Origin: Vitrella brassicaformis CCMP3155
Taxonomy: Eukaryota > Protista > Chromerida
Length of the DNA stretch: 64,000 bases
NCBI GenBank assembly: GCA_001179505.1
Contig: CDMY01000022.1
Location: 1-64,000, forward strand
Reading direction: 5' to 3'
Shown here piece after piece: positions 55,408 through 61,544 of the stretch. A program made the translations under genes and the position numbers. Numbering within the stretch: position 1 is the first letter of the stretch; every line of letters starts with the position of its first letter. A model generated the notes under the pieces. That model had not been told where the DNA came from, did no database searches, and saw only the letters and a list, made by a program, of their open reading frames with translations.

Positions 55408-58400
55408 ATGGCCTGGTCTGTGCTCTCCGCAGCTCTCCTCCTGGGTGCGTCAGCCCGCACCACGATAAATGCATCCATCAGATCACCCATAAAACCCTTT
55501 CTCTTGTGCATGGCGCTTTGCAGGGGTTGCTGCAGGAGTTGTTGTCGGCACCTTCGAGCCGTACGACACGTACCAGTCCACGCTCGAGAAGGCTGGCGGG
55601 CGCTTCCTCAACTTCATCCACGACCCACAACCATCGGCGGCCGCCACCGAGGGAGAGGAGGGAGTCCCCTCCTTCGCCCAGGAGCAGGAAACGGCCGAAG
55701 CCAACATTACCGGTGTGAATGTAGCGACACAACCATAGATACCAGCAACGCCTCACCTGTAGCGTCTTTCGGGTGTGTTTGTGGTCTACAGGCTGGAGAG
55801 ACGACGAGCTTGTTTTTGCTGTGGAGATCTGCCGACACGGTGCGCGGGCGCCCATGGAGGAATTCACGGTCATCCATTCATCCCTTGGCTGAATGATGCA
55901 CCGGCCTCCTATTCTTTCTTATCGTTCGATCTTGTTGTGTGCGCGTGTGTGCCGGCCGGCAGGGTGATAAGGAGAACAAGCTCAACAATTGGCTGGGTGG
56001 CAGAAGCTATCTCACCCAGGTTGGCGAGGTCCAGGTAAGTGCATCCATCCATCCATCGGTCTGTCTACAGACATATTCATGACGTGTGGATGTCCGGTAT
56101 ATCTATGTGTGTATCTACCCATCAGCACTGGCTGCTGGGGCCGATCCTCCGCGACCGCTACGTCAAACAGTACAACTTGCTCTCACCCACATATGCACCG
56201 GTTTGTATGAAAGGATGCACACAAGACGACATAATAGATAGATCTGCACAGGTGGCTCATGCATCACACTGTTTGTTCCCTCTTTCTTTCTCTCTCTCTC
56301 CCTCTCAGGGAGAGATCTACATCCGCTCGTCGGCCATCTGGCGCACAGTCATGTCGGCACAGGCACAGATGGCAGGCCTCTACCCACCTGGCACAGGTCA
56401 GTACCTGGGGGCGCTCGTGTCATGCACATGGACGGACGGATGGATGGATGGATGGATGGAAACATACTGGCTCAATGTGTGTTTGCAGCGCCCTCTTACA
56501 CGAGTCAGCAGACCGAGAAGCTCCGCGCTACATATGCGCAGGCCATCGTGGGGTTGCCACCTGACATGGATTGGGAGTGTGATGTAGATGTGAGTAGCTG
56601 ACTGCGACCCATTGCTACATTTCATTCAGTGCGCATGTCTTTGTGACACGAGAGGTGTGCTTGTGTGTCTGTGCTTGTGTGTCCGTGTTTGTGTGTGTAT
56701 ACATGTATGTATACACACAGACAGTGAGTATGTACGTGTACGTATATGAGACATGCACAGTCCTACTCTACATGACTCATTGTTTCTCTCTTCCATGTCG
56801 TCAATGAACGACAGAGACGGCGTGGCCTCCGCCCTGAGGGGCAGTCGATGGCTCTGGAATCGGGTCATCGGCACGGACATCAACCTTGAACCCGCCCGCC
56901 GTGCACTACAGGACAAGGCCACCGGCAACCGCTCTGCAGACGGGGAAACACACGCGTCCGAGACAGCGGGGAGTTCCACCCACACCGACGGTCGCAACGT
57001 GCGCCCACGGGCCGCCAGGAGCCAAGCACACACCGAGTCCTACTGTAAGCGAGCACACGACGTAACAACACAGAGACACATGCAGACGAACACTCATGCA
57101 GGAAGACACACGACAGTCCAACATGTGTATGTCTTGATCTGTCTGTGTCTGTGTTTGTGTCTGCCTGTTGTGTGTGCTTGTGTCTGTGTGTCTGTGTTTG
57201 TGTCTGCCTGTTGTGTGTGCTTGTGTCTGTGTGTCTGTGTTTGTGTCTGCCTGCTCTGTGTCAGACGTTCGTTGGTTGAGGGCCGAAGCCAAGTCAATCC
57301 AGAGCGACTGGTGCCCGCAACTTCGTCCTCAATCTTCCGGGCGACAATGTGGTGACTGGTGTGGATCAGCGCCTTGTTCTCATCGTCAAGAAATCCTATC
57401 GCTACCTCCTGGTGAGAAAGTGCATCTCGTGCGGATCCCTCTCAGCGCACGTGTTCTGTGTCCCTCAGTGGTCGCTCCGACTCAAGCGGCGTGTGGAGGG
57501 CTGGCTGTCGTCAGTGCGGGACCACTTTCGGTTTCATACCACGCCGCACCCATGTGTACAACAGCCTCAGCCAGTGCATACCTCACTTATGCCCACCTCG
57601 GCGGGTATGGAGGCGAGGCCCCAGGTGGTGAGGCCACCAGGTCGTGAGGACGCTCTGCGTCGCCTGGACGAGGACAGATATGAGGCGGCATGCGATCGAC
57701 TCAGGCATGCGATGAATGAGGGAGTTTTGGAGATGACGGCTGCGTTGGCTGATGACGAGTGCTCTCACCTTTGGCTCACGAGGTGAAAGAAGAACTCGCT
57801 CAGACCTGGAGGGATTCCCGTTTGTGTGTGTGTGTGGAGCACATCAGGCCGGGCGGAGTCAGTTGCGTGAGGAGATGGTCGGGGCAAACAACACACTCAC
57901 CTCTGCTGGTGGCGCTATGTCGAATGGCCTCGTCACTTACTTCGATCAGCATCGCCTTCAGGGTCCGTGCGGAGCTGAGGGGCTTGTGGACTTGACAGAG
58001 CAGGTAAGTGAGGGATCAGAGGCAGGTGGTGCATTCCTGACATTGTCGCCGAGCTGCATACAGGAAGTGAAGATACTGGTGGCCGACCTGCAGATTCTCC
58101 ACCAATGTCGCCGCGTCATGACCACACCTGAGCTGAGCCGCGAATGGGCAAGGCGAATGGGTGAGTTCCTGACCAGGTGCTCGACAGTTGGCGTCGTGAA
58201 GGTACGCGACATCCATCCACGCGCCACGACGACAGATAAGAATATCAGGTTCACTATGTCTGTGTCTGTCGCGGCTGAGGTTAGGTGAGATCTGTGGTGA
58301 CACGTGTCGGTGCCCACCTGCCCCCCCTCGAGTGACGTCGGAGATCGGTGGACGCCAAGAAAGAGAGAAATGTGTCAGTGGGACTCGTGTGTGTGCCTGC

Positions 58401-61400
58401 AGTGCATGTTTGTGCGCATGTTTGACTGTGTTACCATGCCACCGATTGCGCGTTCACTGCACGTTCGACGTTAAATATTGACAAGCAACTCATGTCCGTC
58501 ACCAGGCCACAAGTAGTGGGTGTGGATCCTGGTGACTTTTGCATCGTCGCGCCGAACACCGTCATCCACTGCGAGGTGTACATACACACACACACACACA
58601 CACGCACAGGCAGACTGGCCCCTTCTTCTCTCACTCACTGAGTCAGTCAGTCAGTCTCTGGGCAGTAGGTAGCCATCCCTCCCTCTATCTACTGCTCGCC
58701 ACCTTATGTCATTCGCGTCTCGTGTGTCGATGTGTGTCATCAGGGTGAGGCTATCATCCGCGAGGACGAGGAGCGGCTGGACGATGTGGGCTACGAGGAT
58801 GTCGGGGGCTGCCGCAGACAAATGGCGCAGATCAGAGAAATGATCGAAGTCCCACTGGTGAGCCGCCACACCGAGTGAGCCGCCACACCGAGTGTAAATG
58901 ACCAAGACACACGTGCATTCAAATACCAGGGCGTGCGTGAATTCGAGACGTACGTGAGGAGAAAGGGGGCCGCAAGACACACAGACATACAAACGGCACG
59001 GGAGATAGATGTGTTGTCCCTCCATCCTTTTCTGTGTGCATGATAGAGCGGACAATTTGGCCACGCTGGCTCGCATCACCGGGGTCAGACAGCTGGCGCA
59101 AGTCGATTCGATGGAGGGGGACCGCCCCCGCGACCTTCCGCCGTTTATTCCGATCTTCACCGGCGACAAACATTCAGACGAGATACTCCAAGCCATAGTC
59201 ACAAAATTTATCGTCCAGCCCGCACACACACAGAGAGAGATCCCCTTGAGACACGGCCAATCTCTCCTTCCTCTCTGTGTCGCTCTGTCTGATCAGGAGC
59301 CGTTCATCTGCGACAAGTATGAGTCCGTGTGGCGCGCCCTCAACAACAAAATGGACAAGGGCAAGTACCAGTTCTGGAGTTCATCCGGCCAGTTCTTCAT
59401 GGACGTGTGCACCGGCAAGTTTGGGCACCTGCTCAGTGACCCATTCACCGGTCGAACCTACAACACGGTACGGTCCACAACACAACCTGGCTGGACACAT
59501 CCCTGACCTGCATGACGGACGCATCTCACTGCATGGTGCCTTTCCTGTCTTCCTGCCGATGGATGGATGGATGGATCACTGACAGACATTGCCGGAGCAG
59601 AACGAGATACACGAGCAACACATCAACGAGCTCTTCGCCAAGAACCCACCCGGTGAGTCAGTCCGCAGTTATTGACAGTGGGGAGACAGAGCAGGAGAAC
59701 TCAAGCTTCTTACGTATGTCCGTCTGTCTGCAGGCGCTCCCCTCCACGAATACTGCCTCCTCGATAACCCCATCTTGTCCAATATGCACACATCAAGACA
59801 GACAGAATGGGAGAATGCGGCTCAAGTGTGTGTGCATCTGTGTCATCTGTGTGTGTCTCACTGATTCAGCCGCGCTGGCCTGCTGGGCGACGCTCTAGCT
59901 TCCATACTCTACGGTAATTTCCTAATTTCCACCGTAATTTCCTTCCTCTCTCGCGCTGTGTGTGTGTGTGTGTGTGTATGTGTGTGTTGGTGCCTGGCTG
60001 CGTGCAGATGGCCGGAATGTGGTCAGCATCAAGGAGGACTTCTCCGAAAAAGAGATCAAGTGCGGATTTACCCTCCGGATGCAAGACATTCATGCAACTG
60101 ATTGACCCTGTGGTGTGGTCTCTGTGTCTTAATCTGCTTGTCCCTCACTCATTCATCAGCGAGCTGCAAAACTACATGGACGTTAAGTACAGCTTCACCT
60201 TCGCAGACGAAGTAAGTCACCAACACACACACACACACACAGACAGAGAGAGGGAGAGAGAGAGAGAGAGAGAGAGACGCGGCCTCCGCCTTTTAAAATA
60301 TTAGTGTGTCTGTGGATGCATTCATTCATATGTGTAGTTCTTCGGCCGCATGGCGAGCAGCAGCTTCCTGGACATCGTGCAGCGGGCCATCGAGGCCAAG
60401 AAGGCCGCCCACGCCAAAGAAGGCACCTACACGGCCGTCATGAGCAAAGCCAAGAAACACATTGCACACGTACGCACCTCAGCCAGCCACAGAGGGAGGC
60501 AAGCAGGGCCAGTGTCTGTGTGTGTGTGTGTGTGTCTTGTATCCAGTATTCGGGTATCAACCATCGGAGGAAGAGGACACACACGCCATGCATCCCTGTC
60601 TCTCTCTCTGTCTGTCTGTATGTCTGTCTGTCTGTCTGTGGCTGCGTGTTGTGTTGAATTGGCGCATCGATGACTCCATCAATCAGGTATGACGGAGATC
60701 AAGTTCTCCGAGCTCAAATTTCTCCTCTTCTCGGCACACGATAGCCTACTCACATCCATCCTTTCCACTCTGGGTGGGTGGGTGAGCTATCGGCGGTCAT
60801 CCATCCGAATGTCTGCCTGACGTGTGATGTGACCTGGCTGCCTGCATCATGTCATGGACGGATGGGTGCGGTGCAGGCATGTGGGACAACAAGGTCCCGC
60901 CATTCCCCAGCCACCTCCTCATCGAGCTGTGGAAGAACAAGGAGGGCAGATACATCGTCAAGGTCCGTAAGATAGCGAGGACTCTGCTACCCCCTTTCCC
61001 TCTAGATGTCATTCTCGCGTCTCCCTCACGTCTCTCTCTCTCCATATGTGTGTGTGTGTGTGTGTATGCAGATAATTTACAATGGTCAGGAGCGGGAGAA
61101 GTCTTATGACAGCTTCATGAAACTCATGGCGTCAGTAAACCTAAGACACACAGAGAGACGGAGCAAGGAAGAGAGACATGGAGTGCAGCAGAAAGGGCTA
61201 CGATGTTCCTGCTGGTCGGTCACGCGCGTGTGTGAATCAAATCAGCCGAACGCTGGCCGCTCCCGGAGTGCCTGGCGGGCGCCTGAACTTGGAGCACTGG
61301 TGCCTCAACGCTGAAGACCCTGACTTGATCCCTGATGCAAAGGCCGTCTACGTACGCACAGACACACAGAGGCCGGCGCGTTGGTCATCCATGGACACAT

Positions 61401-61544
61401 GTCTGTGTGTGTGCGGTGCAGAATAACCCCGATTTGCTGCATCGCAATCCCCCTGCTCGCCACGCCACTCGTGCCGACTTCCCCGTGTGTGTGAAGATGA
61501 ACAAGCAAATGGCCGGGAAAATCGCCACTCAGGCACGCACATGA
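55408..61544 (+). CDS. Secreted histidine acid phosphatase (clade 2), many exons
   Basis: Signal peptide [12 protein letters not shown]|GVAAG, RHGARAP (RHGxRxP) at 55833-55853, YLTQVGEVQ|[34 protein letters not shown] at ~60720-60742, [12 protein letters not shown]. Confidence 0.93.
56760..58200 (+). other. Exon-like blocks of an unrelated, apparently frame-broken gene nested in the phosphatase intron
   Basis: Blocks with splice-like ends ([23 protein letters not shown]…; [31 protein letters not shown]|WSLRLKRR…; [11 protein letters not shown]…|[18 protein letters not shown]…). No phosphatase motifs, and phases do not all join. Confidence 0.4.
57146..57253. repeat. ~43-bp intronic minisatellite, ~2.5 copies
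   Basis: Unit tgtctgtgtttgtgtctgcctgttgtgtgtgcttgtgtctgtg repeated in tandem. Confidence 0.7.
58506..58857 (+). pseudogene. CDC48: Two-exon CDC48/p97 (VCP) gene fragment (N-domain end, linker, start of D1)
   Basis: 58513-58575 [25 protein letters not shown] intron 58576-58743, then 58744-58857 [38 protein letters not shown]. No Walker A or remainder of CDC48 in the window. Confidence 0.88.

Follow-up and report, generated by a model that had tools for sequence, protein, structure and literature searches.

A two-exon CDC48 fragment within a Vitrella phosphatase-like gene is probably a recent DNA-level copy of part of a nearby Cdc48(N-D1)-RING gene

Between the exons of a histidine-phosphatase-like gene of the chromerid Vitrella brassicaformis lie two short exons that encode a piece of CDC48, which raises the question of where this piece came from, by what route it arrived and whether it does anything in its new place. 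We analysed it within a window of 64,000 nucleotides, the whole stretch under study (C22:1-64000, in an assembly of 72.7 Mb in 1064 contigs); coordinates given here without a contig name are those of the window. The initial annotation, made from the letters of this DNA, had described two exons of 21 and 38 residues, and we reproduced its translation exactly. Exon 1 (58513-58575, + strand, 21 codons) corresponds to p97 residues 165-185, where the N domain of CDC48 ends, and exon 2 (58744-58857, + strand, 38 codons) corresponds to residues 186-224, which comprise the N-D1 linker and the beginning of D1. The intron between them (58576-58743, + strand) is 168 nt long, runs from GT to AG and contains (CA)n and (AGTC)n runs. 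The exons were searched singly, and were joined only locally to count substitutions and read frames. In phmmer searches of PDB sequences, exon 2 matched Arabidopsis CDC48A and human p97 186-224 from end to end (E 5e-16 to 7e-14) and exon 1 matched p97 165-185 (E 2e-5). Because these two matches are adjacent and collinear on p97, the homology is far beyond chance. By the established domain limits of p97, the matches span the last N-domain strand, the N-D1 linker and the first D1 residues.

We refer to this fragment as copy A. A tblastn search of C22:1-94000 with all reading-frame pieces of the CDC48 locus on contig C603 gave no CDC48-like block in the window beyond 58506-58578 and 58744-58872. 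Thus the remark that nothing else of CDC48 follows is true inside the window, although the fragment is an orphan only there, since a second copy lies 15.7 kb away. Copy A lacks a start codon, its own promoter and any adjoining CDC48 exons. So far there is no disabling change within its coding part. Exon 2 has an intact acceptor and an intact donor, with GTGAGC directly on its 3' side, and at 114 nt it would be frame-neutral if included alone.

The second copy, copy B, occupies C22:74540-74944 on the minus strand, on the same contig, inverted relative to copy A and just beyond the window. Over 383 columns (C22:74540-74922), intron included, its DNA is 95% identical to that of copy A, and the exon-2 proteins of the two copies are 100% identical. 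Besides copy A itself, the only relatives of the fragment in the 72.7-Mb assembly are copy B and the CDC48 exons at C603:79461-79712, which are 91% and 81% identical to those of copy A and are separated by a 73-nt intron that cannot be aligned. The search for a parental CDC48 that the initial annotation had proposed led to copy B, and the position of the intron between the two exons is common to copy A, copy B and C603. We rejected the canonical CDC48 gene as the direct parent, given its exon identities of 81-91% and its unalignable intron, compared with 95% and a shared intron for copy B.

Copy B is embedded in a longer gene. When translated C603 pieces were searched against C22:1-94000 with tblastn, CDC48 blocks at C22:75589-73446 were collinear with C603:78562-80930, and these blocks contain the Pfam domains CDC48_N (E 3e-15), AAA (E 4e-17) and AAA_lid_3. 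On the same strand, downstream of the D1 of this gene, there is a C3HC4 RING finger (zf-C3HC4_3, E 2e-15) at C22:72407-72790. The Pfam matches and the collinearity with C603 together delimit a source gene at C22:72407-75589 (minus strand), which we call Cdc48(N-D1)-RING. The C603 pieces found no counterpart of D2 for it in C22:1-94000, and motifs in its D1 are changed: the Walker B DE reads DH, ATNRP reads ATDRP and RRFGRF reads RQFGRF. With these features, the source gene is an N-D1 paralog of CDC48 in which the ATPase motifs are degenerate. The reading of copy A as the N-domain end, linker and D1 start of CDC48 is thus supported by homology, while its attribution to canonical cytosolic CDC48 has to give way to this N-D1/RING paralog. 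Separately, contig C275 contains a third locus of CDC48 type (C275:248029-248124, minus strand), with 59% identity to exon 2, which may be the plastid (SELMA-type) Cdc48.

To place copy A in time we counted substitutions exon by exon and then summed them. Copy A and the C603 parent are separated by 19 synonymous and 9 non-synonymous changes (dS 0.78, dN 0.068), whereas copies A and B are separated by only 1 synonymous and 2 non-synonymous changes (dS 0.026, dN 0.015). The dN/dS of about 0.09 against C603, a comparison that the initial annotation had suggested, indicates that the paralog lineage was under purifying selection long before copy A was made. In keeping with this, the residues PNT, EA, YED and EVPL, which had been read as decay of the fragment, are all shared with the source paralog; their presence in both copies assigns them to the history of the source gene, in which they arose under selection, and they are no sign that the fragment is decaying. 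The exonic differences between A and B comprise 2 in exon 1 and a synonymous one in exon 2 at 58774. Copy A has G at 58521, C at 58537 and C at 58774, where copy B has A. At all three positions copy A keeps the C603 letter, so the changes happened in copy B, and the exons of copy A show no change from the parental state that is theirs alone. The introns, 168 nt in A and 182 nt in B, differ in the length of their microsatellites and by two substitutions, one T/C and one A/G. From these counts the paralog would be old and copy A young, which is to say that copy A is probably either a recent copy or one kept similar to copy B by gene conversion; the identity of 98-99% could come from conversion between an older copy and B and not from a recent origin.

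The boundaries of copy A show how much of the source was taken. The copy spans 58506 to about 58900 on the + strand, about 0.38 kb in total. On its left, flank comparison with copy B identifies a 7-nt stub of the upstream intron, GCCACAA (58506-58512, + strand). Directly after these letters copy B has 15 nt, comprising a polypyrimidine tract and the AG acceptor, that are missing from copy A. Both copy B and C603 read TGTAG before GTAGTGG, and the AA in place of AG before 58513, which had been noticed earlier and which we also see, arose because the 15-nt deletion took out the 3' splice site of exon 1. On the right, a stub of the downstream intron (58858-58898, + strand) begins with a GT donor. 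Its first 24 nt, to 58881, are the same as in copy B, and similarity to copy B fades by about 58902. Copy A also has a perfect 17-nt tandem duplication of its own here (58858-58874 and 58875-58891), which is absent from copy B. No wider homology was found between 7 kb around A and 9 kb around B, and a larger inverted duplication enclosing both was rejected after a sensitive blastn comparison of 55-62 kb with 70-79 kb gave nothing else that was collinear. A little upstream of the fragment, at 58370-58437, there is a 68-nt GT-rich element with copies 82-87% identical on contigs C723, C370 and C530; these positions are also matched by a short RNA contig that derives from a different copy of the element. 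Parts of this stretch of DNA are present in several metagenomes from marine sediment as well.

Because copy A retains a full intron and pieces of the two flanking introns, it must have been copied from DNA, and the earlier proposal of DNA-level capture as opposed to retroposition is borne out by the internal intron, the 7 nt of upstream intron and the at least 24 nt of downstream intron that were copied. Processed pseudogenes lack introns and carry a poly(A) tract and a flanking target-site duplication. A retrocopy could be discarded, as copy A keeps its 168-nt intron and both intron stubs and has neither an A tract nor a flanking duplication. Indeed its intron DNA is about as similar to copy B as its exons are, with 3 exonic and 2 intronic substitutions and microsatellite indels, as in an unprocessed partial duplicate.

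The surrounding gene is recognizable by blocks of homology to histidine acid phosphatases from 55761 to 61514 on the + strand. Upstream of the fragment these include an exon with RHGARAP (55800-55871), an exon with a His_Phos_2 match (56309-56396, E 1e-4) and an exon at 56489-56589, the splice 56396|56489 being present in an RNA contig (X12 record 5). Downstream of it are exons at 59150-59200 and 59273-59443, found by tblastn with paralogs on contig C347, an exon with the SAHD motif (60617-60775) and an exon at 60876-60965 that is followed by further homology blocks to 61514; all of these are on the + strand. The flanking phosphatase exons are therefore real, as had been claimed, and the fragment sits isolated between them. 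The distance between the 56.4-kb and 59.15-kb exons is about 2.75 kb here and a few hundred bases in the C347 paralogs, and since those paralogs are short at this place, the fragment lies in about 2.4 kb of extra DNA, in the same orientation as the gene. The paralogs themselves are two adjoining phosphatase genes at C347:240000-247000 in opposite orientation, one block of which reaches at most 89% protein identity to the gene in the window.

Phosphatase exons 5' of 56705 are present in RNA contigs, one of which reads through the candidate donor at 56590 to 56705, and no in-frame AG acceptor near 59046 fits the phase-0 donor 56589|56590. Because of this read-through and the lack of a fitting acceptor, we place the fragment only between phosphatase-homologous exons. 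In the RNA runs X10 and X12 no contig covers 59150-59443 or 60617-60965, and the roughly 2.4 kb absent from the C347 paralogs may have split or truncated the phosphatase-like gene. Within the extra DNA there is a nested spliced transcript (57255-58486, + strand; X10 record 2 and X12 record 6) with four GT-AG introns at 57412-57468, 57783-57847, 58004-58063 and 58202-58284, seen in RNA-derived contigs of both runs. The contig stops 27 nt short of the fragment, and the transcript is unrelated to the CDC48 piece. It has no Pfam match and no paralog, nor does any single reading frame span it; the idea of a mosaic of captured gene pieces found no support, the exons of the nested transcript having neither genomic relatives nor a Pfam match.

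Contigs of runs X10 and X12 lack GT..AG introns that the DNA runs keep, and we therefore treated these two runs as RNA. All contigs of these runs that touch the CDC48 exons carry the letters of copy B, with A at 58774 and the two copy B letters in exon 1, and one RNA contig of 2930 nt carries the source-gene variant. In them exon 1 is joined straight to exon 2, with the copy B intron spliced out (X12 record 8), and on both sides they run into sequence that is not near A. These contigs are the mRNA of the source gene. No letter specific to copy A was found in the contigs of X10 and X12; as assembled contigs drop rare variants, this gives no sign of expression of A and yet is not proof of silence, and weak transcription or rare splicing of copy A may occur.

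Taken together, these observations make it probable that copy A is a recent, inverted, DNA-level partial duplicate of the Cdc48(N-D1)-RING gene that now sits in the genome as an inert unprocessed pseudogene fragment, presumably without function. The source is this old, constrained paralog of the full CDC48 on C603. What was copied from it as DNA is a pair of neighbouring exons with their common intron and short pieces of the introns to either side, and the copy landed inverted in the extra DNA of about 2.4 kb lying between two phosphatase-like exons, plausibly through templated insertion or a template switch during repair or replication.

A first rival is an assembly artefact, in which reads from the source gene, or from one of its allelic or haplotype variants, were misplaced in a phosphatase intron: the assembly is a short-read scaffold assembly with many 300-N gaps, microsatellites flank the fragment, and the assembly may itself have been built from the best of the DNA runs. 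However, in DNA-type contigs from two studies (X2, 2015, and X3, 2012) the left junction is crossed without interruption and with zero mismatches by a contig covering 57255-58566. The contig of the shared part (58618-58881) has a depth of 20.3 compared with 10.3 in the flanks, and of 12.8 compared with 6.8, as two genomic copies would give. At the right junction a contig covering 58852-59942 overlaps the shared part by 30 letters, which is what a k=31 graph should give where a repeat ends, and is one short of the bridging rule. Unbroken junction contigs and the twofold depth argue against misassembly, and there is no N run within 6 kb; copy A, furthermore, has a 15-nt deletion and a 17-nt duplication of its own. 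We therefore consider an assembly artefact extremely unlikely. Capture by a mobile element (Pack-MULE, Helitron or a similar transduplication), with the fragment as one part of a 2.4-kb mosaic insertion, would account for the extra length of the phosphatase gene relative to the C347 paralogs, and the initial annotation had indeed thought of a decaying transduplicate. Transduplicates carry terminal inverted repeats or Helitron ends, a target-site duplication and multiple copies of the element. None of these hallmarks was found: copy A is not flanked by terminal inverted repeats or a target-site duplication, a search within 30 nt of 56577 and of 59046 gave no direct repeat of 7-10 nt, the genome has neither a further copy nor a protein-level relative of what else lies in the 2.4 kb, and copy A is not a member of a repeat family, with exactly one source copy, nearby. 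This makes a mobile element a very unlikely carrier. Templated insertion is favoured over transposon capture because the source is near and inverted, the piece is short, transposon ends are lacking and there is a local 17-nt slippage duplication.

It was also suggested that the fragment could be a spliceable cassette, so that the whole piece, or exon 2 alone, would be exonised in the phosphatase-like mRNA or in the nested transcript and add a Cdc48 N-D1 linker peptide. Copy A is oriented like both host transcripts, its second exon combines an AG acceptor, a GTGAGC donor and a length divisible by three, and the contig of the nested transcript stops just upstream. In contrast, exon 1 has lost its acceptor to a deletion, and an alternative AG at 58504-58505 would give exons of 70 and 114 nt, out of frame. 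The reading frames of the nested transcript end before 58486, and the downstream phosphatase exons lack any RNA contig. At the level of X10 and X12 contigs there is no spliced joint into 58744 or out of 58857 except in the copy B mRNA, and the RNA junction check that had been proposed thus shows no exon of copy A joined to the host gene or to the nested transcript. With its first 3' splice site gone and only the source variant in the RNA contigs of the two runs, the fragment is an improbable cassette. Two further roles for copy A, in which exon 2 is occasionally spliced into either transcript as early exon shuffling or the fragment takes part in gene conversion with the fast-changing Cdc48-RING gene and so keeps ancestral states of that gene, we regard as very improbable.

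An inert partial duplicate is an ordinary kind of object, and we expect no new biology from it; the unusual gene is the source, Cdc48(N-D1)-RING, which is the more interesting of the two. A literature search on Vitrella and Cdc48 returned papers on the Cdc48 family and on SELMA, with nothing on this locus. Copy A nevertheless matters for annotation, as a gene predictor could thread both of its exons into the phosphatase-like model or call a spurious CDC48 fragment. It also provides a small, cleanly bounded and dated case of an alveolate genome copying short pieces of nearby genes, and it preserves the ancestral state at three positions where the Cdc48(N-D1)-RING gene has meanwhile changed.

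Functional CDC48/p97 proteins have a complete N domain (CDC48_N and CDC48_2) followed by two AAA cassettes, D1 and D2. Copy A, which contains only the equivalents of p97 165-224, differs from cytosolic CDC48/p97 in having 59 of about 800 codons and no N-domain core, Walker motifs or D2, and it cannot form an ATPase. With the C603 CDC48 and the N-D1/RING paralog it shares homology to that segment and an intron at the same position. Copy A is like unprocessed pseudogene fragments in that it keeps its intron and intron stubs, is partial, lacks a promoter and a start codon, and is missing one of its splice sites; the RNA-derived contigs of the two runs show the source variant only. It is unlike the usual members of this class in its size of about 0.38 kb, in being inverted and 15.7 kb from its source and not in tandem, and in having an undisabled coding part. 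These features invite comparison with templated insertions of the MMBIR/FoSTeS type, a likeness of mechanism that is read from the anatomy of the copy, with junction microhomology that is ambiguous and amounts to a few bases at most. Like such insertions, copy A is a short inverted copy of nearby DNA without transposon ends, and its junctions carry a 17-nt duplication at one side and a 15-nt deletion near the other.
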